A stretch of 64,000 nt of DNA from positions 71,734,001-71,798,000 of the forward strand of contig NC_134473.1 in NCBI RefSeq assembly GCF_964194025.1. Reading direction: 5' to 3'. Numbering within the stretch: the first letter of the stretch is position 1; each line of letters opens with the position of its first letter. The notes below the pieces were generated by a model, which had not been told where the DNA came from, ran no database searches, and saw only the letters and a program-made list of their open reading frames with translations. The DNA comes from Convolutriloba macropyga (Eukaryota). Positions 1-63,459 of the stretch are shown one piece after another. The translations under genes were made by a program, and so were the position numbers.

Positions 1-1030
1 TACTTCAATTTGACTTCAAAAATCATGAAAATGTGTGAACAGATCTTAAAAAAATATATAGCCGGAAGAATTCCGGAAACGACTCGATCGAGAAAATTAC
101 CCATACCTATGACTAAACAATTACAACTATTGTGAACCCCGAACCTCCACAAATGCCATAAAAAATTTGAGGAAGAGTTGAAACGGCATTCAAAAACCAA
201 AAACAAATTGAAAAAAACTAGAAAAACTAATGACTTTTTTAATAGTACAAGAAAACATAAAGCCGAACAAAGTTCCTTTGCAATTAAAGCAATGAAAAGC
301 TCGCAAAACACTGGCCCAGTCATAATAAGCTACGAAACTTGTCTAAGGTTAAAAAAAGGAAAACTGCAAAAACCTAATATGGTTTAAAATTTCTCAATTT
401 TTCTGTCAGTTTTCCTAAGAAAAGAATGATTTATACAAAGAAAACCTTAGCCAGTTGGTATCTGAATATTCTTCAAGTAACAAGCTTCTATTCAAATCCC
501 ACTTACAGCATTAAAACAAAAAACAGGCAAAAAATCATTAAATTGGGTCTAAAAATCAGCAAAACTGATCAAAAAACTCCAAATTAGCATTAAACTCAAA
601 TTAACTACTTGAAACCTTCAATTCCAATCGAAACAAGCCTAAAACTAATGCCATAATGTAATCAAACCTCATAAATATCAAAAGTTGCAAAAAACTGCTT
701 TTAAAAGCCGCAAGTGACCAAAAAAATTCGCTCGCTTAGAGAAAATTTTTTCACGTCAATTTCTCGCTCTCTTAAAAACAGCGGTGTGAACAAAAACCAC
801 TCTTTTCGCTCCGCTCTTCAATTTAGTTCAGCGCCAAATTCACTCCAAATTTTTTTACGCGTTTCGTTTCCCGCTTCAAAAATCACTCCAATAAAATTGA
901 TTAAAAAAAGGACTTCTCCATTACTCCTCTTCGAGTCGTAAAAAGACAGCGCCCCAATACAATTCAAATTCTTTGAATTGTAAAATAGGAGCGCTATAAT
1001 AGCCGGCTAAGAAGATGAGGGCGGCTATTA
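1..1030 (-). mobile_element. Triple-nested HINE/DINE-1-like Helentron stack: family C (about 55-939) inside family B (ends 982) inside family A1 (ends 1029)
   Basis: C has hairpin CCGGAA-gaa-TTCCGG (62-76) and subTIR ACGACTCGA / TCGAGTCGT. B end is AAATTCTTTGAATTGTA. A end is AATAGCCG...GGCGGCTATT. Confidence 0.75.
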
Positions 1031-2804
1031 ACAATAGACGAAAAGGAGTTCATGTTTGAGTATTTCAATGAATCATTCAGGTATCCGATCACTGGAGCTC
1101 CTTCGGTATTCGCGTACTCCACCCAATTCACTATTTCACCACTCATTGCTCGCAATCGTATAATAAAAGCTATCTCATCCTATTGGGTGACAATATTCGA
1201 TAACTTAAACCAAACATACGCCGTCTCCTAGCTCATTGGGTGAGGCAAAACCATATTCCATCGAGCGAAAGGTTTCCAAAAATACATTTTAATTCTGGCA
1301 CGCTTTTATGTGATAAAAATAGGATATGCTGTTGCAATGCATGCATGAACATTAATTTCTGTAACACCTCAATTTGCTGCAAAAAATATTTGCTCAAACG
1401 TCACCTAACTCTCTCATGCTATGCTACGGACCAGATTAAAAAGACGCGAGATAGAATGGTATGTTCTAAATAATTACATTAATAAACTACGGAAGTATTA
1501 TCATCAATAATTTACATTTGCATAAAAATAAAGTGAAGTGTGTGAAAAAGGAACGATGGATGAGATATAGTGAAGCGCAACTAAGGGCTTTGAAAGCAAT
1601 CTTGATGGAATCACTGAACTGAAAGGACAACACAACAACAGTCACAATATCATAAATGATCTCTTTAGTAACACTTCAGCACAAAATCCTGCAAATGATT
1701 TGCTTAAACATTGTCATTACTTGGCAAATTTCTGTTTTTACCGAGTATTTTGATTAGCAGAACTTGTCACACTTTTCCATCATATTATTAAAAAAGGTTC
1801 CAAATTGGCAGAAAATAATGAAAACCTAATTGGAAACTAAATGCAAAATGAAATACCTCGACTTATCAATTGGGGATTGAAAAAAAGATCTATTGTTTTG
1901 CCCCCTCCCGCTCCACCCCAATCGTGGGCATAAAACTTTAACTCCCCTGGGAGGATGCTCCATTTTAACATAGAAACGTGCTATATAACAATACATATTG
2001 AACCTTTAGGTAATGATCAGCACTGGGGTGGGTGGGGGGGGGGGGGGGGGGTGGATAGATACGATAACTTACAACAGAACTAGCCAAACCATGATTCAGA
2101 ATTGGAACTGCGCCCGCGGAATACAGCGAGAGTCGTAAAAGCAGTCACTTGCCAAGTAATGGTTCCAATTTAAAATCAAGTAGAGGGCTCGAATTTCAAA
2201 CAATTTCATATAGATGTCAATTTAAAAGTTGATAGAATTAAGGCACGTTAGAGAGAATCTTGGTAAAAAATGATCTAAAGTTGAATTCAGAAATCATCCC
2301 ATTTATTATTAACGAGTCACTATTTGAATTTGAGATTATGATCTTGACGATAGAGTTACGGAAGACAATTAAAAGAATTTATTTGGTTAATCACAAAAAT
2401 AGTAAATAGCATCTTTGATTTTATTAAATGTTCAGATAAGAATTCCCTGCGCCCATTGAAAATTGAGTATAAAAAAACTAAAATGCACCAGAATTAACTA
2501 AACTGAACTAAAAGGGTCCAAAAATGTAATGACATTCTTTCCTTATGACATATGCAGCCAAAAATGAAACTATAATGACGACAAATAATTCCTGTTTATT
2601 AAAAATGTTTCCGTTTTTTGAGTTAATGCCTTGTAACTACTGATCTTTATAATTTATAATTTTCACCAAGCATATTCTTTTATGTCCCAGATTCTAGTAG
2701 CGTTGAGATCAATTTTTTGGTAGTTATGACGCTGTAATCGTTTCAGCTTCAAGTATACTCAGCTTGAGCTTCAACCCGTTTCTCTGAGCAGTTCGAAAAT
2801 TTGA

Positions 2805-5257
2805 TCAGCAACTGACAATTTTGGCAGCATGATATACAACACTATCGTTGTCTTCGGCCTCCTCTTCCGTATCTGAGCCACTTTCATCCTCCTCGTCACT
2901 GAATTCGTCATCGTCAATCAGATCCAAATCCGCGTCATCGTCCAAAACAGCTCGAGTTGGTTGCCCAAGAGACGACTGCATAGCGAGCCACCTCGGGTCA
3001 ATGTTGTTGGCCAAAAAGGACGAAGGCAGTTCTGATGTATCTTCGTAGATACTTAACTGTGAACCTTTTTCGTCGTCAATAAAAGGAATACTCGGATTTG
3101 AACTGTTTGAGTCGGTAGATTCTTCGCTTCCAGTGTACGAAGATCTAACCGGACCTGGATATCCATATTCAAAACTTCCGCTGTGACGAAATGGAATTTG
3201 AGCGTAAAAGTCTGGGTTTCGAGAACTAGCACTTCTTCTTAGAATACTTCTCGTTGGCTGCTTGGCTAGTGACTGGGTGATCGCAGTTCGGATTTTGATC
3301 TCTCGCTCTTTTTCCTTTTCGGTTTGTTGAGAGTCATTCTCATAATGCAGATAGTCATCGTAAATGCTTTCAACAGAATGCTTACAAACATTTTCATTGA
3401 AAACAATTTTGTTCCGCTTACGCAGTTGTGCGTTAGAACTTACATCACTCTTCGAGCTCGGAGTATCGCTGCCTGAATTGAATGAATTGTCTTTAGAATT
3501 GGTGGCCAGCTCTTGAGCAACTGAACCCGCGGCTCCTTCGATGGGCAATTCATTTTGGATAGCAGGATCAGATCTGACTGATTTCTGCTCATTGCCATCG
3601 TTCAACTGGCTCTGAACAAATTCTTCCGCACTCAAAGTTGTAATAAATTCATCACCTTTGCCTGCATGTTCGTTCTCACCGTTTGCTGTTTCATTTTCGT
3701 GGTCGTCATTTTCGTAGTTATTATTATCACGCAGAGATTTTCCGTCTTTTGCACCGGTTGCAGCTTTGATTTCGTCCAAAGGCATGCTAGTCTTCATAGC
3801 CGGTGGTATGCCATTATAGTACTCGGTTCCGGGGATACTAGCTTCGGCATTGAAATAATTGTTGAACTGAGGCTGGATGTCTCGCTTCTCAACAGACCCA
3901 GTGCTCTCTGTTGAATTCTCCGCGTATACTGAGCTTGATATGCTTCCAGTGTTGTAGTTACTTTCGATGGAATCAAAGCTCTGATCTGTTTTCTGAGTTT
4001 TTCCACGTTGCATAGAGTTCTGAGCACCCTCCAGGTTGATATAAGACGACCCAGCTGCTGACGTAACGGGATAATTGTCTTGAGGTAAATTGGTAACTCT
4101 TTCCAAGCCCGATGTAGCAAAATCACTCGGTATTGGTTCAAGGTACTCCAAATTATTTGATGTCCTGAGAGCTTCTTCATTTTGAGGAATAACGAGAGGC
4201 TGCGGCGACGGTGCTTTGACAGGCTGGGGTTGAGCACTTTGTTTCTCAGCTTTAGGCTTCTTTCTGAAGAACGATAACCTGTCGGTTGCGGACCGGCTAC
4301 GAGACGTTACCTTGTCGGCCGATGGGTTCAAATTGGGGAATCTTTGTTTACCCTGAGACGATCCCGAACCCGTAAAAGTTCCAGTGCTACTTTTATCAGA
4401 ACTGGATCCTTTTGGCTTCCACAAAATATCTGTCCAGGTTGTTTTCTTGGACTTCTTTGATTTTGACGAGGTAGGATTCATGAAACTTGAAACCGGAGGC
4501 TGCGAGTTTACTGTAGGCATCAATTGAAGAGGCTGGGGTTTCCTCTGCAAGAAATCAGGTCTATTTTGGAACCTTGTTGGATCTGAGAATTGGTTCCGAT
4601 TCTGCGACATAATAACCATCTGATTTGGGAAACCTTGAGCTGGTAAGAAGGATCTGTCAATTATCAATTGAGGATCTTGATTGACAAAAGGAGCATTGGG
4701 TGGCTGATATCCCTGGATGCTATAGCCAAAATTTTGCTGCGCATATATTTGGTTGCTGTTGCTGTAATTCGGGTATCCCAAGTTATAAGTCGGGTCACTC
4801 ATTTGACTGAAAAGTAGAGGAGGGTGAGATCTTGAAGACATAATTGGATCTGAGTTTAACTCTGGCTCCTGATAAGGTGTCGGTATTGACTTCGGAATAC
4901 TGCTACTACTGCTGGACTCGGTTTGAGATGATGAGGGCAGAAATTGAGATGAGGTTGGAATGCTTGCTTGATGTTGGGGTTCTATAATGCTACTTTGGGT
5001 GCATGGCAAGTCGGTCTGGGATACGGTGGAGGAACCATCCTGAACAGAGGGCAGAGAATCCTCAGTATTTAGGTTGAACTGATCCTGATTATGGGTGCTG
5101 CTGACAGGAGTTAACACCGGTGCGGCTTCGTCCAGAGGAAGAATGTTCTGATCTTCATCTTCGTCCACTAAGGTCGAGTTGTTGCTCAGAGTGTCTAAGT
5201 CTTGGTTTGGTGGGGTGTCTTCTTTGTTAGAAATAGTGCTAGTCAAACTCTCTGCTC
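2805..5257 (-). CDS. Terminal coding exon (817 codons incl. stop, plus 2 nt) of a large multi-exon gene; low-complexity S/Q/N/P-rich protein with an acidic tail
   Basis: 838-aa open frame. Acceptor ttggtattttag|GA at 5258-5259 (phase 1) matches the phase of the 7624 donor. Stop TGA at 2805. AATAAA on the minus strand at about 2595-2600. Confidence 0.9.
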
Positions 5258-5986
5258 CTAAAATACCAAATTTGCTGAAACAAAATTTACCGACCATTTT
5301 TGCCCAACAGATTAAGAGCAAAATTGCATTAAATTTTTCCTATCAAGTCGCAGAAAACACTTTTTTTATATAAATGTTATTTGATAACTTTTTGAAAACA
5401 AATCTTTATTCTTAAGTCGAAAACAAATACATACATGGTTTCGGATGTGATTTTTACCTCATTGTTAATTAATGTTACGTATGTTGTGTGATTTTAATTT
5501 TTGTTAAGCATGTTAAGTTTGTTTTAATGGTTTTTAAGTTTGTTTGAATGCTTTTTAAGTTTGTTTGAATGGATGCACCATTTGGTTGTAATTTTAATTT
5601 ACTTGTTTTAAATCCTGATCATGATAAAGGGAAAACAGAATCTTTGCGATTGACAGGCATTTTTGCAATTTTACACGACATATAATGGTCAGGCGACACT
5701 GTGATTTCCATTGAGATAAGCAATACACAAGTTCATTTGCACAGTTGAATCTCTCTTCACACTTCCATAACCAAAAATATGTGATCAAGCTTGATCCCGC
5801 TTATAACTTCCGTTGTAACCTGCTGTTTTGAAAGCTTGAATTGCTGACGTCACCATGACAAACCATTATCAATCGAAGCATTACATTTGCTTACTATAGT
5901 TCCGCTACAATATTCAGAATTTGACAATTCCGCTACAAAATTGAAGTTTTCACAATAACAACTGTTGTTAGCAAAGTAGCATGTAG

Positions 5987-7469
5987 AAACATAGCCGGCA
6001 GATTGCCGGAATAGCTGCGAAAGAATAGAACTGCGTGCCATATAATGGAGATAGAAACAGATACAGATCTAAATTGAAAAAATTCGACGCCGCTCAAAAA
6101 ACTAGGTAAAAAACATTCAGCGATAAATTAATAAAGCTTGTTAAAATTCATTCCGGGGAAGCCTCTTATTAGGGACCTTTACTGCACAAATGAGTTCCTT
6201 TGACCTTAAAGAAATTCAAACTAAACTTAAGTTTTAAAGCGCAAAAGTCATTTTATTGAGTGAGGTAAGGCACGTATGATCAAAAACTAATCACGCAAAT
6301 AACCTAAAAAATTTTGCTTAAGCGAGTGAGAAATGACGTCACGCGCGCAAATGCCGTTAGTGAGAGGAAGAAGTCATTCAGAAAATTTGACTTTTTCAGC
6401 TTTGCTGTGTGAACAAATGTAAAACGAAAAAAGAGCGTCAGACGACGAAACAAAAAAACGTAGCAGGACAAGCCCTGACGTACAAATCAAAGAATTTTCA
6501 TTGACCAGACAAACAATTAGACCCAGAACAGACTATGGGAATACCATTAGGGAAAACCATTTCTAAAAAATCAGTTGAAAAAATTTAAAAAAAAACAGAA
6601 AATCGATGTCAAACTGCCGCATGTGAACAAAAACCAAAAGCGAGAAATAGAAATTTGGTTCAAACAAAAAACTAGGCCTAGAATGAACTATTAATGGATT
6701 GGGAAAACCACTGAGAAAAAAAATCCGATCCAAAAAATCGAAAAAACAGTAAAAATCAGAGCGAAACTGCCGCATGTGAACAAAAAACCACTAGCGAGAA
6801 AGCGAATTTTTGTTCAAACACCGTTTTCTCACTCTACTTCAAATTTAGAGCAAAAAATTTCATGTCTCAAAACCACTCGCTTTTTCGCTCCATTTCCTGT
6901 TTCGGCGTGACCAAAATCACTACTCCAGACTTCAAAAATCATGAAAATGTGTGAAGAGATCTTAAAAAAACATAGCCGGAAGAATTCCGGAAACGACTCC
7001 AAGGAGAAAATTGCCCATAATTATGACTAAACAACTGGAACAACTATTGTGAACCCTAAACCTCCACAAAAGCAAAAAACTGCTTTTAAAAGCCGCACGT
7101 GAACAAAAAAACTTCGCTCGCTTAGAGAAAATTTTTTTCACACATCAATTTCTCGCCTTCTCAAAAACAGCGGTATGAACAAAAACCACTCTTTTCACTC
7201 CGCTCTTCACTTTTGTTCAGCTCCAAAATCACTCAATTTTTTTCACGCGTTTCATTTCCGGCTTCAAAAATCACTCCAATAAAATTGATTTAAAAAAAGG
7301 ACTTCACCAATGCTCCTCTTCGAGTCGTAATAATAATAAAAATGACTTCTCTAATACTCTCTTCGAGTCGTAAAAAGACAGCGCCCCGATACAATTCAAA
7401 TTCTTTGAATTGTAAAAAACCAAGAGCACCGCAATATAGCTTTGCTCAGCTTACAGCTTCGCAGCTGTA
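5987..7469 (-). mobile_element. Complete triple nest: HINE-A2 (5987-7469) containing HINE-B (about 6457-7414) containing HINE-C (about 6968-7371)
   Basis: Three terminal hairpins on the left (CCGGCAgatTGCCGG, CAGGACaaGCCCTG, CCGGAAgaaTTCCGG) are closed in reverse order by their matching subTIRs on the right. Confidence 0.8.
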
Positions 7470-7623
7470 AATAATCCCGCAAGCTTCGAATTTAGTAAGA
7501 CATTTTAGCATCGCAGATTATGCAATTGAAGCTGTCAGCAAAAAGTACAAACTAAAATTTAAAGATCAATCCATTTAAACAGCTATCATCATAATCAGCA
7601 GTGAATGATTAAACAACGCTCAC

Positions 7624-8822: not shown

Positions 8823-9892
8823 AAAACATAGCTGGCAGATTGCCAGAAAATAGCCGCAGTAGCTTCGTAGATCTGCAGTCTCAAAAAAAACAGTAAAAGA
8901 CAGACCAAAAAAATAGTCTTTTCATTGAATGCTGATATGTTATATTTTGATTAAAAATCTGCATGTTCTTGCTGCCTCTATTAACTGCTCTCAAATACCC
9001 TTCAATTAGAGTGACACCCACCCATTTGACCTTATCTCTTTGAATTAAAGTAAATAAACGTCAATTTCAAAATGAGGAAGTCATTTTTGAGAGTGAGGTA
9101 AGTCAAGTCTGACCAAAAAATTAATCACGCGAATGAACAAAAAAATTCGCTCCACTAAGAGCGAAAAATGACATCACGCACGCACTTCAGTTGAAATTGC
9201 ATGAACGAATGAACAAAAGGCAGATTTGAAGTGGTTGTGACGTCAAATGGTCGTAACAAAAATCTTGACGGCGAACTAAAAAACATAACAGGACAGGTCC
9301 TGATGTACAATTCAAAGAAGTTTCATTGACAAAACAAAAAACTAGACCTAGAGTGGACTATGAGTGAATTGGGAAAACCAATTCTAAAAAAAATCAGATA
9401 AAAAATTTAAAAAAAAAACAGAAAATCAATCTCAAAATGCTTCATGTAAACTAAAAACCACTAGCGAGAAATGGACTTTTTGGTTCATACAAAAAACTAG
9501 GCCCAGAATGAACTATTAATGGATTGGGAAAACCACTTAGAAAAAAAATTCGGTACAAAAAATTTAAAAACAGTAAAAATCGAAGTGAAATTGCCGCATG
9601 TGAACAAAAAGCAACTAGCGAAAAAGCGAATGTTTGTTCAAAAACCGTTTTCTCACTCTACTTTAAAATTAGAGCAAAAAAATCACGCCGCAAAATCACA
9701 CGTTTTTTCAATCCACTTCCTGTTTCGGCGTGACCGAAATCACTACTCCAATTTGAATTCAAAAATCATGAAAAAGTGTGAACAGATCTTAAAAAAAAGA
9801 CAGAGCCCCAATACAATTCAAATTCTTTGAATTGTAGAAAACCAAGAGAAGACCGATAATAGCCCAGCCCCAGCTGTCGCTGTGCGGCTATT
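8823..9892 (-). mobile_element. HINE-A3 containing HINE-B (about 9281-9835)
   Basis: Hairpin CTGGCAgatTGCCAG; subTIR AATAGCCGCA / TGCGGCTATT. The inner B copy has an empty C site (cagatcttaaaaaaaagacag). Confidence 0.75.
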
Positions 9893-9897
9893 AATAA

Positions 9898-10436
9898 AAA
9901 CATAGCCGAAAGATTGCCGGAAAAAAGCCTACGTTGACGCTCTTATGCACATCGGGATTGAAACAAAAAAAAGTTTTTTTTTCAGTGTCAAAAAGTGTCC
10001 TAATTTTCTGTTTTTCTGTTTTTTTTCAGTGTCAAAAAGTGTTCTAATTTGTCGTGCAGTTTCAGTTGGATTCTAAAACTATAAATCATTCAGCTGCTAA
10101 AATCAAAGCTAATAAGCTTAATACCAATGTCAGCTAGCAAACACTCCAATGGACTTTGTTAACCTAACTCTCAAGGATTTAATGACCGGGCTTTATCGGT
10201 TTATCCCGTCTCCTTTGATTTTGGTCTTTTGACTTTGACAGTATTCACCACATTGCGTAATTGAATGACTGAAAGATTTTAAAATCCATTCAGTTGAAGC
10301 AGTGAGTGAAGTAAGTCAGAAGTCAAACGTGAAAATCGGGACTTGTGTAAAACGAAAAACGCTATCAAAAGGTAAAGCAAATTAAAAAAAAAGAGCGCCT
10401 AAATATTAGCCGTCGAGAGGCTGACGGCAGGTATTA
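9898..10436 (-). mobile_element. HINE-A4 (second copy at about 47626-48136; fragment at about 19920-20080)
   Basis: Same AACATAG+hairpin terminus; colinear homology with 47626-48136. Confidence 0.7.
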
Positions 10437-10449
10437 ACAAACCGGTAAA

Positions 10450-13130: not shown

Positions 13131-13309
13131 NNNNNNNNNNNNNNNNNNNNNNNNNNNNNNNNNNNNNNNNNNNNNNNNNNNNNNNNNNNNNNNNNNNNNN
13201 NNNNNNNNNNNNNNNNNNNNNNNNNNNNNNNNNNNNNNNNNNNNNNNNNNNNNNNNNNNNNNNNNNNNNNNNNNNNNNNNNNNNNNNNNNNNNNNNNNNN
13301 NNNNNNNNN
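13131..13309. other. Assembly gap (N run)
   Basis: N bases. The gap sits where the (TA)n-containing part of the BEL LTR would be expected. Confidence 0.99.
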
Positions 13310-39419: not shown

Positions 39420-39720
39420 TCTAAAAGCAGCGAAACGAAAGCGAGGCTATTATTGGTCGCATCATGATTTTTTTTTAAAAAATATTTAATATGAACTTGA
39501 ATTGCATTGGGGCGCTGTCTCTTTACAACTCACAGGAGTGGAGTATTGATGGGGCACCTTTTTAAATTGAAAATGCTATTCAAATGTATTTAAAACAGGA
39601 CATCTTTCAAATGAAACGTGAAAAGGAAGTTCTGGTCATTTCATTGAGCGAAATGAAGCATCTGTTTAATGTCCCTTTCTTCGTGGTTTGAACGGTTTTG
39701 CTCAGCGAAAAAAAATTCCT
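39420..39720 (+). mobile_element. Diverged, opposite-orientation ends of an A/B/C nest
   Basis: The reverse complement reads C end (ctcctgtgagttgta), B end (gacagcgccccaatgcaattcaa), A3-type end (accaataatagcc). Confidence 0.6.
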
Positions 39721-44301: not shown

Positions 44302-44350
<49 letters not shown>

Positions 44351-47016: not shown

Positions 47017-47559
47017 AAAACATATCCGGCAGATTGCCGGAAAATAGCCGCCGTTGATTCCAATAAGCATGAGTGGGATTGAAAGAATAGAAGATATTGA
47101 AAAAAAAAGATTTTTGTACAAAAACATTTTTTAAGTCCGATTTATTTTGATGGCTTTTCGTAGTTAAACATAACGTATTTCTGTTTCTTAGAGAGAGGCT
47201 ACAGGGGCTACTATCAATACCAATAAGCATTAGAGATGGTAACTAAGACATATAGGAACGACGTTCAAATAGCGGGCATCTAAAATTGGGCTTTATGGGT
47301 TTATCCCGTTTCTACTTCGGACTTCAATTTTTTATACTGACTCTGTTCATTTTGAATTGCTTTGCTGAGCAACTGATGTTCAAAATCACTTTTAGCAGAA
47401 TGAGAGAAGAGAGAAACTAGCCAAGAGAAGTCAAAAAGATATCACGCAAAATGTTGAAAAAGCGGCAAAATGAGGTAAAGCGAAAAATTTTTTTATTCGA
47501 CGAAGTAAAAAAAAATACGAGAGCTATAATAGCCGGCTGAGAAGATGAGGGCGGCTATT
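47017..47559 (-). mobile_element. Uninterrupted HINE-A1 reference copy (empty B site)
   Basis: Hairpin CCGGCAgatTGCCGG; subTIR AATAGCCGCC 47043-47052 / GGCGGCTATT 47550-47559; partial IR AATAGCCG at 47528; A-run flanks. Confidence 0.85.
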
Positions 47560-48727
47560 AAATAGCTTAACAGCAAAATAAATCTATTCAATACCGACAA
47601 ATGAGATTTAGACAGCTCTAATATTAAACATAGCCGGCAGATTGTCGGAAAATAGCCGCCGTTGAAGCGCTAAACGCACATCGGGATTAAAACAGAAAAA
47701 GAAAAATTGGAGATAGAACATGACAGAATTTTCTCCTAAGTGTCGAAAATCGTTTTAATTCAGTGTGCAGTTTCAGGTAGATTCAAAACCTATACTTAAT
47801 TCAGCTTTTATACTGATTAAGCTTAATGCTAACAGCAGCTAACAATAGCTCTAAAGAACTCTGATAACCTAATGCACTATGACTTAATGACCGGGATTTA
47901 TCGGTTTATACCGTTTCATCTGATTTTGCTCCTCCGACATTGACCGTATTCACTACATTACGTTATTCAATGCGTGAAAGAATTTGAAATCCATTCAAAT
48001 GAAACTGAGTGAGGTAAGTCAGAAGTCAAGCGTGGAAATTGTGACTGATGAAAAAAAACGAAGACGTGATCAAAAGGTAAAGCAAATTAAAAAAAAAGAA
48101 AGAGCATAAAAAATAGTTGAGAGGCTGACGGCAGCTCTTCAAAATGGCACATTGAAACTTTTAAATCAAAGAACATTAGCTAAAACCAAGAAAAAGCCGA
48201 ACGTGAACAAAAGAAAATCCATCGCTTGCAGAATTTTTTAAATTTCTCTCGCGAAAACAGCAGTATAAACAAAAACCACTGTTTTTCGCTTCACTCTCCA
48301 AATTTGCTCAGCAGTAAAACGACTACAATTTTCTTCACGTTTTTCATTTCCTGCTTTCAATCAAATTCACAAATTCTCATTCAATTTGAATTTAAAAAAT
48401 TGATTTAAAAAGCTTGAAAATTTCCAGAAACGACCCGAGTTCAAATCTATGCTTTCAGATTACTAATATCTACTGGTAGAACTTATGAAAGCAGAGAAAA
48501 TAACACTTAAATAACTAAGGAAAAATTAAATATAAAATAAAAACTTAAAAATTAGGAATAAAATTGTTGACGCTATTTTAGGCCAGCCGTAACCTCATCA
48601 ACATCTCTATGACTTATCATAAACATCCTTTGTAGAAGAGAGAAATTAAGAAAAAGAGAAAAAATTCAAATTTCTAATTTTTGTCAAATTGTACAGAGAA
48701 ATGCTTTGCGCAAAAAAATTAATTCGA

Positions 48728-48897: not shown

Positions 48898-49547
48898 GGT
48901 AAAATAGACTAAAAATCAGCAAAATAGCAACTAAATTATGATTACCAAAATGCTTCAAAACGCTTTTATAACAACCTGAATAATAGAACTTTAAAATATT
49001 ATAATCTTCGAGACAGCATAAAAATGCAAAACAACCGACTAACGGCGGGCGAATTGCTCTCCGGCGAATAGTTAGCTTCGTTAGTAGCCAGCTGGGGCTA
49101 ATGGATGCTAGCATTATGGTGGGTTGACTGGGGGGGGGGGGGGGGGGGTCAAACGTTTAGCATTAAGAACCGCCCTTCACGTCATGAAATTGTCTCCTCA
49201 AAGCAGTTTTGTTGAATCACATTCTTAGAATATAGTAAGGCTTAGGGCTTCTACTACTTCATGCCCTCCGAGCGCTACCTGTTTATCTCGTTTTTGAGGA
49301 CGAAAAGTCAAATGGGTCAGAATCAAAATCTCATAAAAAAGGCCACAGGACTAATATTATGCTACAACTTCGTTTGAGAGCAATTAAATAGAAAACAGCT
49401 TGAATAAACCGCACGTGTAAATAAAAAAATTTGCGCGCTTGATGTACCTTTCAACATTTCGCAACTTGACAACGGAATCGAAAAACTACTATCTTTTTGT
49501 ATCACATAAGCTTTCAATCACAATGAGCACCAACGTGTAATACCAAC

Positions 49548-49751: not shown

Positions 49752-51430
49752 CTAAAAGAGCGCAAGTTAGTTCCACACCTTTACAATTGTATATAAAAAT
49801 TTTGAGCAGACAGTGGGGTTCGTAAGGAGGGGGAGGTGGGTGGACGAGAGGCGGCGGGGGAGGGAGTGGAGTGGGGGTGCAAACGGAGTCAGGGTTGTTT
49901 AAACCTCCAAACTAACATCGGGTGAATTGCTCTGAAACTCGAGGTGGCAAGTGGAACTAACTGATGTGGTAAGCCGAAATGCTCTAAGAGCCCTTAATGA
50001 CCTCTCAGCGTTACGTTAAAAACACTTGACAAAAATACCATCAGCCAAGAATCGCATTAGAAAGACCACGTGACTAATATAATTGCTACAAACTTCGTTT
50101 GAGAGAAACTTAGCGTACATGGCGAAAAAACCGTTCAATTTGCATATATTTTGGCGGAAAAACTGTATAAAACCCTTCACTAGCCTATGTTTGCAGCACT
50201 GCCTCTGCAAAGAAGTGCTGCTGTACAGCTCCGGTAAGTAATTGACTAGGCTCTGCATAAAAATTATGAAAACCTACAACTCTAATTGCTACCACATTTT
50301 AATTCTGAGTTATCTTTCAGTTGTAAGAGGTCGCATATGCTAATTTCTTAAGGTCTTATCCATATAAACGTCAAATTATGAAAAACCAAAAATGAAAAAT
50401 CAGCTGATAAATTTTGAGCATGAAAAGACGACAGTTAGCTTCCAAGCTTCTGCTGAACTGAAAAGGTCTAGCTTGCTATTAATAGGCAGCATTATGAAGC
50501 CTCACCCCATTAAGACCAATATACACCCCTCCCCCATAATAACACACAAATATTGGTTGTTCAATTATGCATAGAAACTACAGATGGAACAACTTCCGTG
50601 TTCAAATGGAGAAAATATCAAATATAGCTTTTATACGCTGTTCCTTTGATACAAGAAACAATCAAACCACTTAGAAGGGATAAGAAAATGGTTATACTTC
50701 AAGACCTCCGGAGACCTACAATATGTCCATTAATAATTGATAACACAGTCAAAAGACTTGACAATGGGAGCAAGAAAAACTTACACTTCATTTCTTTGTG
50801 AAATCACGGCGGATAAAAAAACAATTAGTAGATGACATTCTCAAATGAGCTGAATTCGGATAGTCCACCCATTGTTCGACAATACGGATAGCTCACTCAC
50901 GTTTTGAATAAAAAACAAATTGCGTTGAAGTGCTTCATAACGGAAGAATTTCGACTTCCAAATAAATTTTTTTATCGAGGTATGAGGAAAAACGTCGTTG
51001 AGAAGACGAGAAAAAGGCTCTTACCTTGATTTTGGATCTGGTTTCAGAATAGGCCAGGCAAAAGAACATGAGAACACTTTATAGTCTCAAAAAAACTGCC
51101 TTTGTTCATCGTTAATTTTAGCAACAATAATGACACTAAGGCATTGATTCGTAGCTTAATTTTTCGTCTCGCCTTAAGAAAGTTCAACTTGAATGTCCCT
51201 TTTGCAAAATCAGGGCGTCTTCAAGCACCATCTGAATTGCTTTGAAAAATTTTCAGGCTATTATTCAAACTATGTTCTGTGAAGCCTGATAGCCGATAAA
51301 AGTGATCTAAAAAATAATTTAAACACTTTTTTTGAGGCATTTTCTTGCGAACTATAAAACGGTTTCCAAGAAGCTTGGCTTCAAAGCAATGAGCGGTTGC
51401 TTCTCTCATTAACGTAGTAAAAAAAAAATA

Positions 51431-54261
51431 AAACATAACGGACTAACGTCGGTAAAATTGCTCTCAAACAACCGGTGAGCGGTTGGCTTCGTCAGTAGCT
51501 AGCCACGTTTTAGAGAGACTAGCTTTAGCTTGATTCGACTCTGCAACTTTTAGTTTTCAAGCCTTGTTAGTAAACAAATAAAACCGACATTTGAAAAAAC
51601 TGCAAAATTTAAAAGAAAAGCTTCCAGATTTCGCAGTGAAAATGTTCAAAACAATTTTTGTCTCTGGAATTATGTCAAGTAACCCATCTGCAAGACTTGA
51701 AAAGCCTCGTTGGCCAGTAATGATCGTTTAACTTAGAAAAGGACAAAAATGGTCAAATATTTTGCAAACAAAATTTTATCAAAATCCTGCTAAGACTCGG
51801 GATATTAATATCTTCAAAACAATTTTTTTGTCTCAATAGCCTATCCAGTATCCCTATTTCAAGCTTTAAATAGTTTCACTAGCTCATAAAGATCCATAAA
51901 CATGGTACATGATAATTTTCCAAAAATTTGAAAAATAAATTAAATTTTATTAAAAAATGCTTAAGCTGGAGTCATTAAAAAATGATAACCATTTCATTAG
52001 TTCTAGAAACTATGCAGCAGCTTATCATCAAGCCTTGGAGGAGGTTCCTAGAAACCTCGTGCCGGAAAAAATCAAAACGATTCAAAAAAACTTCAAAAAG
52101 TTCAGTTTTTTTGAAATTGCTGTTATTAAAAACTTGAAGAACAATCTACTACATGTAGAAGCTATGCAGTAACCAACCATAGAGGCGATTATATGGCTGT
52201 TGAGGCTGGAAAAACATAAAAAATGACAAAATTGATAAAGAAAAATGACGAATGAAAAAAAAACCTGAAAAAAACTGCAAGTTGCATAAAAAACTGCTAA
52301 AATTTCCGACAATAAAAGTTAAAACTAATCCATAGCCAAAAATATCAAGTAACTTACTATCAAGTCCTAACGGAGACTTTCTGTTAGGCTGAAAAACCAG
52401 AACAATAACAATGTCAAAAAAATTGAAAAAATGCAGGTTTGGTAAAAAGAAATAATGCTAAAATTCGTAGTGTTGAAATCTTGACAACCAATCTATTACC
52501 TTTAGAAGCTATACAGTAACCTATTGTCAAACCCTGGAGGCTTTTGACGCCGAAGAAACCGAAACCTGACATATTCTGTCGAAAAACTTAAATGCACGTT
52601 TTATAAAAAAAAATTGCTCAAACTTGTGATATTAATTTGAAAGAAATTCCATGGCAAAAAAATTTTATTCAGTAACTTATTATCAACAATTTAAGGAAGT
52701 TTTCTGGCCCCTGCATCTGGAAAGACGAGAATAATGAAAACTAAATGTCAAAAAAATCGAATTTACAAAAAGATGTTAAAATTCGTGATGTTAAAATGTT
52801 GAAACCATTCCACTACCACTAGAAACTATGCAGTATCTTATTATAAAGCCTTAAGGAGGTTCCTTGACACCTAGGGCTGCAAGAACTCAAAAAATGACAA
52901 ATGTCAAAAATCTTGAAAAAATCAAATAAGTTTTAAAAAAATCATTAAACTCGTTATATTAAAATCATCAAAAACATTTCATTACATCTAGAAATTATAT
53001 ATTAACCTATTGTAAAACCCTAGAGGAAGTTCCTTAGCTCTTGAGGCCGGAGAAACCTAAAACGTGACAAAATCTGTCGAAAAACTTGAAAAAATGCAGG
53101 TTTTATTCAAAAAAAAAATTTGTCATATTAAAAATATTGAAACCAATTCCATGGCAAAATAATTTTTTTCAGTAACTTAATATCAAAATTTTAGGGAAAT
53201 TTTCCGGCCCCTGCTTCTGGAAAGACGTGAATAATGAAAACTACATGTCAAAAAACCTGAAAAAATTTGCACGTTTTGTCGAAAAGATGCTACAATTCCT
53301 GATGTTACAATGTTGAAACCATTCCACTACCACTAGAAACTATGCAGTATCTTATTATAAAACACCAGAGGATGTTCCTTGATACTTAGGGCTGAGAAAC
53401 TCAAAAAACGACAAAAAATTGTAAAAAAGCTTAAAAATGCAAACAAGATTTAAAAATCATTTAATTCGTTATATTAAAATCATGAAAAACATTTCATTAC
53501 ATCTAGAAATTATATATTAACCTATTGTAAAACCCTAGAGGAGGTTCCTTGGCTTTTGAGGCAGTAGAAACCTAAAACGTGACAAAATATGTCGAAAAAA
53601 ATGCATGTTCTATAAAAAAGCGCTAAAATTTGTCATATTAAAAAATTGAAAATTCCTTGGCAAATAAAATTTTTTCAGTAACCGGTTATCAAACCCCTAA
53701 GACGCTTTCTGGCCACTTCGTCTCGAAAGATGTGAATAATGAAAAATAAATGTCAAAATTGAAAAAAATTGAGACTTATGCAGTAATATATTATAAAACC
53801 CTAGAGCTTTCCTTGACACCTAGGCCTTAAAAAACTCAAAAAATGACAAAAATTTTCAAAAATCTTGAAAACAAATTGCAAAAATTAGTATAAAATTGCG
53901 TATTTCTAGCGATCAACTATCAGTAGCCACGGGGTGGGATGAGGTGATTGCGGAGGGTGGTTAGCAACAGTGGGATGGGGGACGACAGCGTGGTGGGGGC
54001 GGGGGGTCAACAGTGGGGGTGTCCTCAACCCCTCTAAGAACAGCCCTTCACAGCATAAGTATAAGTCTCCAAAACAGTTTGAGCTGAAACAGAGCTGAAA
54101 GGCTCTAAGAGCACTTAATGCCCGCTGGGCGCTACCTGTTTATCCCGTTTTTAGGACGAAAAGTCAAAAGCGTCAGACGAAAAACCGGTCAAGCAAAAAA
54201 TCGCATAAAAAAGACCAACAGGACTAATATAATTGCTACAATCTTCGTTTGAGAGCAATTA
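51431..54261 (-). mobile_element. Long HINE-D with a central tandem-repeat array (about 51800-53880)
   Basis: subTIR AATTGCTCTCAAAC 51456-51469 / GTTTGAGAGCAATT 54247-54260. Degenerate units of about 120-130 bp (ctagaaactatgcagtaac..tattatcaaaccctagaggag). Confidence 0.8.
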
Positions 54262-54662
54262 ATTAGCCTAATCATTTTGCATCGACGGTCATAAGCACGC
54301 GCAAAAAAATATTTTGTAAAATGACTTTCAATTTTTCACAGAAAAATTAAACTTAAGCCATTTCATCCGTTCCACGCTATTAGTGATACACTAAAACTTC
54401 TAGGTTACACCTGCCGTCAAACGTCAGTTTATGCGAAACAGATATTTATTTTGAACAAACTTGTCGTTTAGTCCAACCAATTAACTGAAAGTGACTCTGT
54501 GATAGTTTCATCTGGTGTCAGGACAGTTTACTCAATGCCATTTCACCCAATGCCAACTTCATTTTACCAATTGTTAAAATTATAAGAACAACTATCTAGC
54601 CGACTATATAATTAAATGGCCCGTTGGAATTGATATGAAACTATCACAACTGAACATGGGAT

Positions 54663-55186
54663 AAACATACCCGGCATATCGGAAAATAGCCGCCGTTGAT
54701 TCCAATAAGCATGATTGCGATTGAAAGAATAGATATTGAAAAAAGAGATTTTTGACGTACAATTAAGAGAATTTTCATTGACTAAACAGAAAACTAGACC
54801 TAGAACTGACTATGAATGGATTGGTAAAACCATTTAGAAAAAAATCCGATCCAAAAAAAAACGAAAACAGTATAAATCAAAGTCAAATTGCCGCATGTGA
54901 ACAAAAAACCACTAGCGAGAAAGCGAATTTTTGTTCAAACACCATTTTCTCACTCTACTTTAAATTTAGAGCGAAAAAATTTCACGCCGCAAAACCACTC
55001 CTTTTTCGCTCCACTTCCTGTTTCGGCGTGACCAAAATCACTACTCCAATTTGACTTCAAAAATCATGAAAATGTGTGAACAGATCTTAAAAAAAAGACA
55101 ACCCCCCAATACAATTCAAATTCTTTGAATTGTAAAAAAAATAGGAGCGCTATAATAGCCGGCTGAGAAGATGAGGGCGGCTATTA
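54663..55186 (-). mobile_element. Internally deleted HINE-A1 + HINE-B composite
   Basis: The A1 left end is fused at about 54753 to B (which ends at 55134), followed by the A1 right end. Confidence 0.8.
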
Positions 55187-55987
55187 ATAAATGGCTATAT
55201 AATTAAATGGCCCGTTGGACTTTATATGAAACTATCACACACGAACGTCGGATAATTGAACGAAAAGATCAAAGAGTAAAGGGTAAGATGGCGTTGGGTA
55301 AAATGGCAGGTTGGGTAAAATATCATTGCGTAAAATTACATTGGATAAAATGGAATCGGGTAAATTGTCATGTAACCTTTCATCTATATAGAATCTAACC
55401 TTAGATGCAAAACCGCGCGTACTTGAACTAAAACCGCTGATAAATTTTCGATAGAAAATAAGAACTCGAATTGATATGATTTAAAAATTTAGAACAAAAA
55501 TTAAATGAAACTTATACGAAGAAAGAGTGAGTGGGTCAGAAATATGAAATTTTTTGAAAAACGCAAGGCTAATTTTCTTTTGAAATGGAGAACATATTTT
55601 GGTAAATCAATTCAGTTAAAAACTTTTCAGTGATACAATAGAAGCGGAACGATGTTTACCCACGCAATCTGATGCTTGTCGCACCAAATGAGCAGATTGT
55701 TCAATCCCTTATTCGAGGTCAAACAAATCTCAAAATGTTTCAAGAGGCACACTGCATTTTTTGGTCACCCTGATAAACGTTTAAAAAATTAACACCCATG
55801 ATACGATAAGTGTGGAAAAGACTGGTAGTCTTAATGAAATGAAAATATCTACCCCAAGTTTAAGCGAGAATCTGGCTGTGTGAAATAATGAGCAACGTAA
55901 AAATTTAAGTCTCAAATTTTCTCTTAAGGATAGATTCAGTTTTTCAAGAACTTTGCAGGTAATTATCAATTGATGTTAAAAATAAAT

Positions 55988-56374: not shown

Positions 56375-56406
56375 AGGCATATATATAGTTAGATGTATGC
56401 ACTAAC

Positions 56407-56568
56407 ATTTCCTGCTACGAGCCACAAAACTCTGGTTGCGCTGTGTGGTTGGAGCCTCCGCTGTTTTACTGTTCGCAGATGGCAAGTCATCTTTTGAAGA
56501 CATTCGACGTTTGGGATCCCAACGCGATGGCAAGAGGTCCAGGCTCTTCCGGAGGCCACTTCTCGAAC
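56407..56568 (-). CDS. Internal exon (SRSGLRKSLDLLPSRW...VARSRK)
   Basis: aaatgtccag| acceptor, T|GTTAGT donor, 162 nt, phase 1 to 1. Confidence 0.85.
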
Positions 56569-56848
56569 CTGGACATTTAAAATTAATTAATCTCAGCCAG
56601 CGCAAAAAATGATTTATAAGATCCGATATTGAGGAAAACATTTGAGTGTTGATGAAATTAAAAAGACAGCAACCGTGAAACGTAAGTTAATAGCATAAGA
56701 TAAGTTAAAAACAGTACATCACATTACACCACTGTTAGACTTCGAATTCTTCCACCAAGCAGCCTTATTAGGGTTTAAAAGAGAGAATTGTTAGATATAA
56801 AATCTCGCCCAACCCTCTGAATAACTATCTTATATATCGCAATTCAAT

Positions 56849-57792
56849 AAACATACCCGGCAGATTGCCGGAAAATAGCCGCCGTTGATTCCAATAAGCA
56901 TGATTGGGATTGAAAGAATAGAAGATATTGAAAAAAAAAGAATTTTGTACAAAAGAATTTTTTAAGTCCGATTCATTTTGATGGCATTTCGTAGTTGAAC
57001 ATACTTCTGTTTCTTAGAGAGAGGCTACAGGGGCTACTATCAATACCAATAAGCATAAGAGATGGTAACTAAGACTTATAGGAACGACGTTCAAATAGCG
57101 GGCATCTAAAATTGGGCTTTATGGGTTTATCCCGTTTCTACTTCTGACTTCAATTTTTTATACTGACTCTGTTCATTTTGAATTGCTTTGCTGAACAACT
57201 GATGTTCAAAATCACTTTTAGCAGAATGAGAGAAGAGGGAAACTAGCCTAAAGAAGTCAAAAAGATATCACGCAAAATGTTGAAAAAGCGGCAAAATGAG
57301 GTAAAGCGAAACATTTTTTTATTCGACGAAGTAAAAAAACATAGCAGGACAAGTCCTGACGTACAATTCAAAGAATTTTCATTGACTAAACAGAAAACTA
57401 GACCTAGAACTGACTATGAATGGATTGGTAAAACCATTTAGAAAAAAATCCGATCCAAAAAAAACGAAAAAACAGTATAAATCAAAGTCAAATTGCCGCA
57501 TGTGAACAAAAAACCACTAGCGAGAAAGCGAATTTTTGTTCAAACACCATTTTCTCACTCTACTTTAAATTTGAAGCGAAAAAAATTCACGCCGCAAAAC
57601 CACTCGCTTTTTCGCTCCACTTCCTGTTTCGGCGTGACCAAAATCACTACTCCAATTTGACTTCAAAAATCATGAAAATGTGTGAACAGATCTTAAAAAA
57701 AAGACAGCGCCCCAATACAATTCAAATTCTTTGAATTGTAAAAAAAATAGGAGCGCTATAATAACCGGCTGAAAAGATGAGGGCGGCTATTA
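56849..57792 (-). mobile_element. HINE-A1 with a full HINE-B inserted (57337-57740)
   Basis: Colinear with 47017-47559 except for B in the A-run after CGACGAAGT. B has a perfect 17-bp subTIR (57362-57378 / 57724-57740) and hairpin CAGGACaaGTCCTG (57345-57358). Confidence 0.88.
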
Positions 57793-59131
57793 ATTACAAT
57801 CTTTGAAGACGCACAACATACTTCGATTTCATGGCGCATGTTTTGGTCGAATCGTAAGGAGACAGAAGCCATCTTTAACAGCCCTACATTGATCATAAAC
57901 CTATCAGTGCGCACCCTAGCACTAGGAAATGCCCGACTAGAAACAAATAGAGTTTGTTACCCGGGGCAATGCAACCCTACCCAATTAACTAGAATTCCCA
58001 GACAAGGAGATTGTCTAATGTGGGATTAACAAAATTAACTGGTGAAAGCATTCATGTATTCAAAATGCATTAACATACACTTGGTAAATTCAGCTTCTAT
58101 TGATATTTTCCTTCCAGCTTTGTTGAACAAGCGTACGTAATTTATCCATTTCCCAATTTTGAAGCCTTCCTAAACGTTGAATGGAAAAGGAAACAGGATT
58201 GATTAACGGGAAGCTCATTATGCTTACTGTAGATTTCTGAATCAAAGGAAAAACAATCTGCCGTCGCTTAAAATGGCAACGCGCTCTACAAAATAACAAT
58301 TACTTCCTAGGAAAAGGAATGACGAAATAGCGTCGACGCCTTCTGACTAATTAATGCATACTAACCCTCAGAAATAGGTATACTACTTTCTATCAATCGC
58401 ATTTCTTGACATTATTCGGCTCTATATGGTAGCGCCACCTAAGTACGTCACCCGTCGCGAAGAATTCTTCACGCTCGATCTATATTAACATAGAAAATCA
58501 GTACTGATTCATGATATTTCAATTCTGTATTTTTATTACCAAATTCTGACTATCGAGCATGAAGACTCAGACTCAAATAAAACTTATAAAATATTCACTA
58601 TCTGTTAATAGAATGAACTCAATTCTGATGAGAGATACCATATTGACCATGTCACTTTTACAATGTCACCTTAAAAAATCATATTTAAAATTTTGAATGT
58701 CTGAAATACCCTGCCCAAGGGTGTTTTCATGGCCACTTTTGGAATCGAAATGTTCAAATGTCAAAACGGTTTCTAGTAAGGAAAACGTGCCTTACCTAGT
58801 CTTTAAATGGAGTTTAAAAAAGTACAGATAGAATGAGTGCTTTGACACCAACAGAATGCAATTGAGATATATAAAACAGCAATGTTATGAGACACCAATT
58901 GACCAAGTGAAAAAAGAAACTGTTTCTTTCTGCTACCCCTCCCGCTATATTTGGACCCTCCATAAAAATTTACGCCAATAAAATGGTAATGGCTAAACCC
59001 ACCTCTTAATATGCTATGCAAACCAATGTCAGTGCAATAACAATCATCAGTTTGTTCACGCGTAACATTGAAAAAAGTGTACACGGAGGGGAAAAGAAAC
59101 AGTTCCGAGAATATCAAATTCAGACTCAAAC

Positions 59132-60596: not shown

Positions 60597-62199
60597 CTGA
60601 AATCACAAGTTTGGTACGAAGATATCAAACTAATGCGCTTGTGCACTTAGGTCACACGTCAATTAGGACAATTAAAAACTATCAACTGTACTTCAAAGTC
60701 CATCATTGCCACTACTAATCCCAGCACCAATGATACCATCCTTTATCATTCATTGCGTCTTTGTAACAATAAAATCTTGCAGAAATAGTTCTAACTCCGC
60801 AGAACTGCACTTCTCATAAGCTAATTGCCGTTTGATGTAATAAGCAAAATTGTTGATAGCAAATGAAAGCCGACAGTTAATATTATAGTGACTCATTCTG
60901 TTGCAATAGAAAGTAACCCAAATTATTCTAAGTTTGAGCATGAAAACACTGCTGTGTAACAAAAAGCAGAAGAAACCCAAAATTCAACATGGTATGACTA
61001 TAATGAGAACTGTTAAGCTAAGCATTGTTTCACTATCTTCAACCATGAACCAGCGATGCTAAGTTATTCTTAAAAGTTATGAAACAACTTGTACGATCCG
61101 AGTACTCAATTGACGTGGCTTCTACTTCTTGGATATCATATCGCTCATTTAAAAATAGATTGAAATATGTCGCTACAATTACAAGAAAATTTTGAATAAT
61201 TTCTGAAACAGAAAGTAACTCTTCAAAAGATAGAAACGCGTCTTTGATATCACTTTCGAATGGATTTGAATGAACTAACTAATAAAAAAAAAGCTGGAGC
61301 GATAATGATGACGTAATGAAAAAGGACACGAAGACTAAGTCAGTAAAAAAGGGGTTCGACAACCTAATTTACACCCATACAGTAAGTTCCAAAAGCCTCT
61401 GGAAATTACTCTCAGCTACGTGAAAAAGGTTTTATGACAACTGGAGAAGCCAGAGGAATTCTGAACGTATGCCCCCACCACCCCCCCCCCCCCCCCAGTT
61501 TTTTTTTGAAATTTAAGTCTGAAAAAACTTTAACTTGCCTTTTTTTAATGATCTTTCCAAATGCACATCAAAATTGAATAGTATCAATTGTATAAGCTTA
61601 ATAAGTTTTACTTCCCGTTCTCTCAGTTCCATCCCCCCACCTTTTGTGCACACGTATCCCGTACATTTTAAGGCTTTTAACCGCTAAATTAAACAGAGCG
61701 TTTGAATTACAAATTTAAATATCAAAACAAAGTTCTTGAAATTGGCAACTGGCAGCATTTAATGATACCAATTGAGTTCTCGAATACTGATAATTCAACG
61801 TCAAAACTTCTTATAGTTTCCAACACAAATAGTAATCAGTGAAAACATTGCCGGATGAATTGGCGGATGAATTGCCGGATGAATTGGTCTCATTGAACGA
61901 GTGATGGGTCATCAAAACCTGCTTCAGAAAGGAGACGGACTTTTAAATGCTTTCATTAAGGCCAAATTTACAATCTATACGTTGAAAAAATGAAACCAAT
62001 TTCGGCACACTTTCCATTAGGCTTCGAATAGCAAACGGAGTCAATCCGCTTTTAACAATGCAATACGCAAACAAAGAAGTCAAGCGTGAAAAAAGTCCCT
62101 GGCGAAGACATCAGGAGAAAAATAGCCAGGCAAAAAAATCACACGGTTTGCCATATGCCTATGAAGGGCGCAGGTTTTAGAACCTTCAGCTAAAAATTT

Positions 62200-62660: not shown

Positions 62661-62959
62661 CTTTGTAGTACCAAAAGATATAGCTCATAAAATGGTCAAA
62701 AAAGTAATTATATCTTGCAAAAGACTTTTATCAACTTTGCCAAACGTCAATTCAAAACTGATCAAACAAAAACTCGAAAAATGACAAAAAATTCAAAATT
62801 GCGCCATTTTGGGCTCCAAAATTCTAATAAAGACCTTTTAACCTTGAAAAAAGGCTTTCCAGTGTAGCTGTACGACTCTAAGCAATTGAAGGGCTACTAT
62901 AGCCGGGTTGGCGCCCCTAATGAAACTTACTGTCCACTGTTCATCACTTGTTTAGCTCC

Positions 62960-63459
62960 TTTTGAAAGATCAAAGTTATGAAAAATGTGTAGAAACCTCT
63001 TACAAAAAAAAGACAGTACCAATACAACCCAATTCAATACAACATAGCAGGACAAGTCCTGGCCTAAAATTCAAAGAATTGTCATTGCATAAACAAAAAC
63101 TAGACCTAGAATGGACAATGATTTGATTGGGAAAACCATTTAGCAAAAAAATTGTGAAAATTGAAAAAAACTGAAAACAGAAGTCAAATTGCCGCACGCG
63201 CACAAATATCAAAAAAGAGAAAGCTGATTTTTAATCAAACGCCGTTTTCTTACTCTACTTAAAAATTCGAGCAAAAAAGTTCTTTTCGCTCCACTTCCTG
63301 TTTCGGCGTGGTCAAAATCACAACTCCAATTTGACTTAAAAATCATGAAAATGTGTGAAGAGGTCTTAAAAAAACGAGTGCTCCCAATTAATTCAAATTC
63401 TTTGAACAAAAACCAAGAGAAGTCCAATAATAGCTTCAGCTATCTCTTCGTGGCTATTA
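62960..63459 (-). mobile_element. Tandem HINE-B end, HINE-B (63039-63406) and A3-type end
   Basis: AACATAGCAGGACAAGTCCTG at 63040; ends aattcaaattctttgaa then accaagagaagtccaataatagc...ggctattaa. A similar degenerate B+A end lies at 42670-43073. Confidence 0.7.

Follow-up and report, generated by a model that had tools for sequence, protein, structure and literature searches.

The HINE/DINE-1-like non-autonomous Helentrons (Thomas et al. 2014, PMC4067079; oyster Cg_HINE, PMC7492417) display subterminal inverted repeats (subTIRs) of 9-14 nt, a stem-loop after the 3′ subTIR, an inverted repeat that pairs with the 5′ subTIR, a variable number of terminal Ts, insertion at T/T without duplication, internal tandem repeats and a very high copy number. 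The same papers describe a general T-rich/TT target preference, but neither a fixed landing run inside resident 5′ ends nor stacks formed across families. Stacking is known from FoHeli, a Helitron2-type element of Fusarium oxysporum, in which two to five 5′ termini follow one another as a result of self-insertion: a copy is held to insert just inside the 5′ end of another, and copying then starts at the outer 5′ end and proceeds as far as the first 3′ end (PMC5148889; PMC13342296). Here we analyze a window of 64,000 nt from Convolutriloba macropyga (NC_134473.1, 71,734,001-71,798,000, plus strand; coordinates below are relative to this window), an AT-rich stretch (GC 31-42%) with several element families that share all the above features of HINE/DINE-1 and are nested in one another, repeatedly in one homologous A-run just inside the 5′ end of the host. 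An initial annotation had reported this nesting; a self-comparison of the window places repeat clusters at the sites it named, all its junction and element coordinates are borne out, and the observation is real and non-random. However, its formulation as a strict three-tier rule, with C elements only in B and B elements only in A, fails, and its remark that no such three-level rule was known to it has to be set beside the stacked 5′ termini described in Fusarium Helitron2 (PMC5148889, PMC13342296). We consider it likely that these non-autonomous HLE2 (Helentron/Helitron2) families share a landing hot spot, the 5′-proximal T-run of the element strand, and that the resulting composites are amplified, with no rule of tiers.

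The families A1, A2, A3, B and C have a common build, each with its own subTIR (the pairs were found mechanically). Read on the plus strand, the left half consists of As, (A)ACATA, a G+C-rich hairpin of 6-7 bp, the subTIR and the interior, and the right half of an A-run, a spacer of 10-15 nt, a second hairpin made up of an inverted repeat and the inverse subTIR, and TTAA or GTAA. Helentrons and Helitron2 elements are usually drawn as the reverse complement of this layout: here the minus strand is the element strand, with the 5′ end on the right and the 3′ stem-loop on the left, and its T-run is found 33-59 nt in from the 5′ end and 10-15 nt past the 5′ hairpin. The subTIRs, at ~9-17 nt in all five as expected of HINE/DINE-1 elements, pair as AATAGCCGCC/GGCGGCTATT in A1, AGCTGCGAA/TTCGCAGCT in A2, AATAGCCGCA/TGCGGCTATT in A3 and ACGACTCGA/TCGAGTCGT in C, and B has TACAATTCAAAGAA plus its own inverse. 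The 3′ hairpin is CCGGCAgatTGCCGG in A2 and CTGGCAgatTGCCAG in A3, and both the hairpin and the subTIRs of A3 show compensatory changes relative to A1 (stem CTGGCA/TGCCAG versus CCGGCA/TGCCGG; subTIR ...GCCGCA/TGCGGC... versus ...GCCGCC/GGCGGC...). Across the families, the 3′ stems, which stand just before CTATG-TTT on the element strand, come in the compensatory variants CCGGCA/TGCCGG, CTGGCA/TGCCAG, CCGGAA/TTCCGG and CAGGAC/GTCCTG. These motifs are far beyond chance in the window, the A-type hairpin having 14 matches versus 0.33 expected, and the B and C 3′ ends having four and two, respectively, versus 0 expected for each. When the element strand is folded as single-stranded DNA, the 5′ subTIR and its inverted repeat form the 5′ hairpin that is a feature of DINE-1, with an unpaired T-run after it, in A1, A2, A3 and B (z -2.3 to -3.6); what had been labeled the non-hairpin end thus folds into a hairpin as well.

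B additionally has internal repeats of ~155 bp (6506-6666 versus 6661-6820; 9334-9487 versus 9489-9640), which are below 76% identity and are overlooked by Tandem Repeats Finder, although it detects the stacked B 5′ ends described below. None of the A, B or C copies in the window contains an open reading frame (ORF) of at least 150 aa, and five ORFs of at least 150 aa in the window have no Rep or helicase match; as no autonomous Rep-helicase partner is found in the window, Helentron and Helitron2 are not distinguished by it. All structural HINE/DINE-1 features that we examined are present, which supports the assignment of A1/A2/A3, B and C to the non-autonomous rolling-circle HLE2 elements, HINE/DINE-1-like as initially annotated. 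A reading as tRNA-derived short interspersed nuclear elements was dropped, the tRNA scan being empty.

B interrupts the A-run of three host types, namely A1 (B at 57337-57739), A2 (6456-7417) and A3 (9281-9836), and C interrupts the A-run of B at 55-939, at 6968-7372 and in an inverted stack (39420-39560, plus strand) of a C, a B and an A-type 5′ end. The guest occupies the A-run of its host, a T-run on the element strand, with 42-59 nt of host remaining on the right, and always shares the orientation of the host, as it would if the target were a T-run on one strand. Junctions between a B end and an A end lie at 981/982, 7417/7418, 9836/9837, 43020/43021, 55134/55135, 57739/57740 and 63406/63407. 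The A2 host (5987-7470, minus strand) holds a B, which in turn holds a C, and here four 5′ termini follow one another in ~180 nt (7290-7470, minus strand): C (to ~7330), C (to 7369), B (to 7413) and A2 (to 7470), the two stacked C 5′ ends lying at 7290-7372. The A3 host (8824-9895, minus strand) holds a B whose own site (9791-9798) is empty, and A1 with its B forms the composite A1[B] (56848-57793, minus strand). At the left edge, B copy b1 (1-981, minus strand) is cut by the window start and divided into 1-54 and 940-981 by C (55-939), which sits in the A-run with AGATCTT on one side and GACAGC on the other; the B 5′ end is immediately followed by an A1-type 5′ end (982-1031, minus strand) with an A-run, GGAGCGC and the hairpin AATAGCCG...CGGCTATT. 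The old B copy b4 (42674-43072, minus strand) has two stacked B 5′ ends (42937-43020, period 38) and then an A1-like 5′ end (43021-43072), and at 62972-63452 (minus strand) a degenerate B-like 5′ end (62972-63040) is followed head to tail by a complete B (63041-63406) and an A3-like 5′ end (63407-63452).

The empty sites that had been reported for A1 and B are also real: A1 (47018-47561, minus strand) has an unoccupied A-run at 47507-47515 after CGACGAAGT, an A1-like element (40614-40993, minus strand) at 40939-40946, and B at 55089-55096 and 57695-57702 as well as at 9791-9798. The empty A1 shares 95.4% identity with its filled counterpart at 56848, and where it has nine unbroken As the filled copy has 7 + 8; the only additions are thus ~5 terminal As brought by the guest, in agreement with the variable number of terminal Ts in HINEs (PMC4067079). 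This comparison bears on whether insertion took place at all, as modules might instead be exchanged between families where homopolymer runs give rise to template switching or recombination in the course of rolling-circle copying. Such swapping would suit the interior modules common to families, the B profile being matched by the C right half as well as by the interior of an A″ element (678-983, 7057-7415 and 48182-48418; E 6e-16, 8e-16 and 0.005), the conservation of the site flanks among the A families (CGACGAA on the left, AGAGC on the right), and an A1[B] derivative (54663-55187, minus strand) in which A1 position ~95 is fused by a deletion to B immediately beyond the B 3′ hairpin. Yet the guests are complete, with both of their own termini present and one interrupted A-run on both sides; the uninterrupted paralogue (47018-47561 versus 56848-57793) differs by the As expected of element-borne ends; and two precise junctions in a single run are most simply explained by integration. 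We regard swapping without insertion as highly improbable. The derivative at 54663-55187, with its A1 termini and B interior, is in itself a ready-made chimeric family.

Evidence from across the genome comes from Logan contigs of four public runs (X1, X2, X3 and X5) aligned to the A1[B] locus (56400-58300) at a likeness of at least 80%. In X3 (record 17) and X5 (record 24), records of 969 nt each join 56847 to 57791 seamlessly at the flank (single-copy) depth, and partial records of X1 and X2 are compatible with the same empty allele. The A1[B] composite (943 bp, 56848-57790) is missing from the contigs of at least two runs, and probably of all four, with boundaries that are the exact A1 termini. 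As it is absent as one unit, we conclude that the composite moved whole and recently, in accordance with the earlier suggestion that intact host termini leave it mobile. The target was a plain A|A step (caattcaata|attacaa) that was not duplicated, i.e., a TT insertion of the HINE/DINE-1 kind, and hence a long run is not required. A 3-bp TAA target duplication at this insertion was considered and rejected, other copies having GAA or AAA on the left. The contigs of all four runs also lack five letters in a TA-rich stretch (56815-56825), less than 35 nt from the insertion, and have flank substitutions in common, indicating that they represent a haplotype other than the assembled one. Unlike the duplication-free insertion at 56848, the derivative at 54663-55187 is flanked on both sides by a direct repeat of 61 bp (54604-54664 and 55195-55255, 88.5% identical), which may be a pre-existing repeat or reflect a different arrival route.

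The single-copy flank words have depths of 58, 34, 27 and 6-12 in the four runs, and the summed depths in the large runs are 0.9-3.0 million for the A1 part and 2.9-9.6 million for the B part; while summed depths are not copy numbers, this points to copies in the tens of thousands and to B-like sequence being more abundant than A1-like. Among the best-supported contig joints, those skipping 400-404 nt (57335-9 to 57740) represent A1 copies with an empty site. Others run the B site into a B 3′ end (57693->57332; 5, 4 and 6 contigs in X2, X3 and X5), pass from the B 5′ end to the B site and the 5′ end again (57739->57697/8; 11, 14 and 12 contigs in the same runs), join B to B head to tail (57739->57334/5; ~20 contigs in X2), or place an A1 3′ end past the A-run to the right of the B 5′ end (57744/57747->56849; 11, 13 and 14 contigs). 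The sites are thus used by guests of the same family and by A1 too. The first of these joints, seen in three runs, has the same-family guest a short way inside the host 5′ end, as in FoHeli, and the multiple stacked 5′ termini of the FoHeli model recur in C (7290-7372), in B (42937-43020) and genome-wide in the second joint. Furthermore, in each of X2, X3 and X5, ~800 contigs depart from the reference once past the B 5′ end and A-run; their consensus there, CCAAGAGAAC...AGCCC, is an A2/A3-type 5′ end (cf. 7420, 9842), making an A-type 5′ end the commonest sequence to follow a B 5′ end genome-wide. The strict tier rule is contradicted by the B-in-B joints and the A1 3′ ends after a B 5′ end and A-run, as well as by the stacking of two C 5′ ends and by B-like 5′ ends outside A hosts (ending at 32295 and 34634).

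The B segments of the A1, A2 and A3 composites are 79-97% identical, whereas the 113 host nt that adjoin B on the left are only 42-62% identical in pairwise comparison (shuffled baseline 46 ± 12) and the host right ends 20-70%. Thus, identity jumps at both junctions, as expected of independent insertions of B into A. Likewise, b1 groups with B copies b5 and b6 (A1 host, 98%), which have no C, and b2 in the A2 host has one; C accordingly entered B at least twice. These comparisons indicate that at least three insertions of B into A and at least two of C into B are independent. The opposing account, in which a few old chance nestings into T-runs have since been copied as units with no landing preference, draws on the unit-sized presence/absence polymorphism of 56848-57790, on b1, b5 and b6 representing a single A1[B] composite copied to three loci (97-98% identical), and on the b3/b7 and A2/A3 alignments, which continue straight across the junctions. 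It is at odds with B copies ~90% alike in hosts that show random-level identity over the adjoining 113 nt, with the presence of C in b1 and b2 but not in b5 and b6, the closest to b1, and with the B-in-B junctions at the same site and the stacked ends of several families genome-wide. We consider it quite improbable as the whole explanation. Amplification as one unit had been named beforehand as an outcome that would refute repeated targeting; composites are indeed copied as units, but insertions were also independent, and the repeated use of one homologous A-run is upheld.

The position itself departs from chance. In a model of landing within the host, the probability that five independent events all fall in the site is p = 2e-6 with every AA step counted as a target, 1.5e-4 if runs of at least 5 are weighted by length and 9e-3 if runs of at least 7 are so weighted, each value being conditional on landing in those five hosts. 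Over the window, six of the eight B/C guests are in sites that constitute 9% of the A-runs of at least 6 (p = 1.5e-5). A transposase that simply favors long T-runs, the 5′-proximal one being merely the longest and the hairpin playing no role, would accord with the T-rich targets preferred by HINEs and Helentrons (PMC4067079, PMC7492417), with the empty sites, which at 8-10 As are in the top 10% of runs, and with a window-wide enrichment versus runs of at least 8 that falls short of significance once every guest is included. It does not account for equally long runs of the same hosts that are unused in the window (47100-47108 in A1; 57457-57464, 9409-9418 and 6587-6595 in B; 8883-8890 in A3), for the length-weighted joint p of 0.009 to 1.5e-4, or for the short AA/AAA targets used by the polymorphic A1[B] and by other stand-alone A copies. 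T-run length accounts for part, but not all, of the site preference (p ~0.009 to 2e-6), and we hold it unlikely to be the only factor.

Several observations weigh against a shared hot spot and have to be set beside the above. The in-host p is only ~0.009 for runs of at least 7, the enrichment of the site is weak versus window runs of at least 8, and the site is usually the longest or near-longest A-run of its host. Only ~5-6 independent events are arguable from the window; much of the copy number is composite amplification, and nested counts therefore exceed event counts. A tree of the six B copies pairs b5 with b6 with support but does not place the old copies b4 and b7. In the single-stranded folding, the 5′ hairpin is weak in C, A′ and A″. 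Guests are also found elsewhere: a tentative 3.4-kb B-like element (28936-32295, minus strand; hairpin CAGGAgaagTCCTG at 28945, 5′ end 32187-32295 paired with a B-like 3′ end at 28940), which is not in an A host, has other elements inside it away from its 5′ A-run, and an A1-like remnant (44857-44900) is interrupted in an A-run near its 3′ end by a 1.6-kb element (44905-46505; the whole 44857-46505, minus strand; hairpin CCGAAtaacTTCGG, CCGAA-taac-TTCGG, at 44905; subTIR pair 44929 + 46490), the context of this insertion being degraded. One class of contigs has an A1 end within an internal B run, and, as only the best-supported joints were listed, off-site insertions are undercounted to an indefinite extent. 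As for the claim that B always sits ~40-60 nt inside A, the distance stands (42-59 nt at the junctions above), but "always" does not, given the B-like 5′ ends at 32187-32295 and 34555-34634 outside A hosts and an inverted B-like pair at 41008-41411. The second of these ends (34555-34634, minus strand) is old, with an empty A-run (34591-34598) and no A-type end after it.

Under the shared hot spot that we favor, the T-run past the 5′ hairpin is a preferred landing place for elements of the same superfamily, with the guest entering in host orientation between the host 5′ signal and the rest of the host, such that both host termini survive. A host transposase that ignores the foreign inner 3′ end would then recopy the composite as one unit, and copying halted at the inner 3′ end would yield chimeras with stacked 5′ ends. 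Nests of one family, in particular, would stop at the first 3′ end and produce double-5′-end chimeras, an outcome suggested earlier for FoHeli (PMC5148889, Fig. 7 legend); that stacked B 5′ ends, on the right, outnumber the matching left B-in-B junctions fits copying halted in this way. Deletions of inner termini might subsequently create new mixed-module families, and the interior module common to B, C and A″ fits a turnover of families in which deletion follows nesting. The C-in-B-in-A order is better explained by the timing of family activity together with the copying of composites as units. With respect to recognition, the inverted repeat of the 5′ hairpin shares the sequence of the 3′ subTIR, so that the series inverted repeat, spacer and T-run resembles a true 3′ end (3′ subTIR, stem-loop, TATG and T-run), and this 3′-end look-alike may be where a transposase with its incoming strand cuts and joins. 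We infer that the hairpin and the downstream T-run are read by the transposase as such a look-alike. A possible, if doubtful, extension is that they are the true recognition target of HLE2 elements, mimicking the 3′ end, and that the run is kept because the guest hitch-hikes in a mobile host.

Further elements of the window belong to the same setting. An A′ element (9898-10437, minus strand) stands head to tail with A3, its 3′ end being a few nt past the A3 5′ end, and its A-run (10384-10392) is empty; the A″ element (47625-48141, minus strand), 60 nt past A1, has an empty site at 48089-48097 and the interior module common to B and C. A tandem duplication of 943 bp (40711-41651 / 41673-42612, 97.6% identity) comprises part of the A1-like element at 40614-40993, repeated at 41673-41952, and the inverted head-to-tail B-like pair. 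An additional Helentron-like family (hairpin CCGACtaacGTCGG, subTIR ATTGCTCTCAAA) is found at 29720-31422, 33919-34156, 49028-49395, 51430-54266 and 63891-63990, with long internal tandem repeats (52251-53771) and 5′-proximal A-runs of only 5-6, all five of its sites in the window being empty. There is also a strand bias, with 58 A-runs of at least 8 versus 12 T-runs, and ~14 or more independent HLE2 copies nearly all point in the same direction, the sole inverted ones being the 39420-39560 stack and the 41008-41411 pair; integration into one strand of the replication fork or selection within genes could be the cause. G-rich low-complexity blocks (GGTAGG-like repeats, poly-G/poly-C) lie inside or adjoin elements at 45320-45930, 31090-31180, 33880-33905 and 61478-61497. 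Of the five ORFs mentioned above, only the fragment at 25724-26368 (minus strand) has an endonuclease match (endonuclease/exonuclease/phosphatase domain, E 1.9e-5) and probably comes from a non-LTR (long terminal repeat) retrotransposon. An uninterrupted ORF of 838 aa (2805-5321, minus strand), long for chance in AT-rich DNA, has no Pfam match and weak atlas matches to disordered fungal-type protein clusters. An assembly gap (13131-13309, unstranded) is outside every element discussed, with unrelated DNA on one side, a retroelement-derived region on the other and the nearest element ends at 10437 and 13310; as no nest spans it, continuity there is immaterial to the finding.

The closest parallel remains FoHeli, whose stacked 5′ pieces measure 31-85 nt as compared to 42-59 nt here, and the B-in-B junctions and the stacked B and C 5′ ends are alike in kind. 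However, FoHeli elements are autonomous, fungal, self-inserting and present in a handful of copies, whereas here several non-autonomous families of an animal are involved, in tens of thousands of copies; FoHeli1 and FoHeli2 target TNAT|A as opposed to a conserved T-run downstream of a 5′ hairpin; and, unlike in FoHeli, there is direct evidence of a heterologous composite moving whole. Helitrons that adjoin one another or stand in tandem, related as well as unrelated, have been reported from bat, maize, silkworm and Drosophila (PMC4067079 section 15; PMC5148889), and head-to-tail pairs are found here too (9895/9898, 63040/63041 and the inverted 41008-41411, in addition to the many B-B contig joints). 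While arrays elsewhere are usually ascribed to missed termination, the partners here can be diverged subfamilies, which argues for repeated insertion into one run rather than read-through. In the literature on acoel Helitrons and nested Helentrons that we searched, we found no description of a conserved 5′-proximal T-run serving as a landing site across families, nor of a heterologous composite as a polymorphic insertion.

The polymorphic A1[B] composite implies that this system was active recently. Target choice in Helitron-type elements is poorly understood beyond a dinucleotide preference, and if the landing pad of hairpin and T-run is real, it would offer a concrete and testable substrate for target selection by the HLE2 Rep-helicase. 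It would likewise explain the origin of mosaic non-autonomous families and of stacked 5′ ends, and would mean that annotation pipelines wrongly split or merge composites numbering tens of thousands. Should the hairpin and T-run moreover prove to be the true recognition target, these families would constitute a self-organizing network of transposons parasitizing transposons, which would drive their modular evolution.

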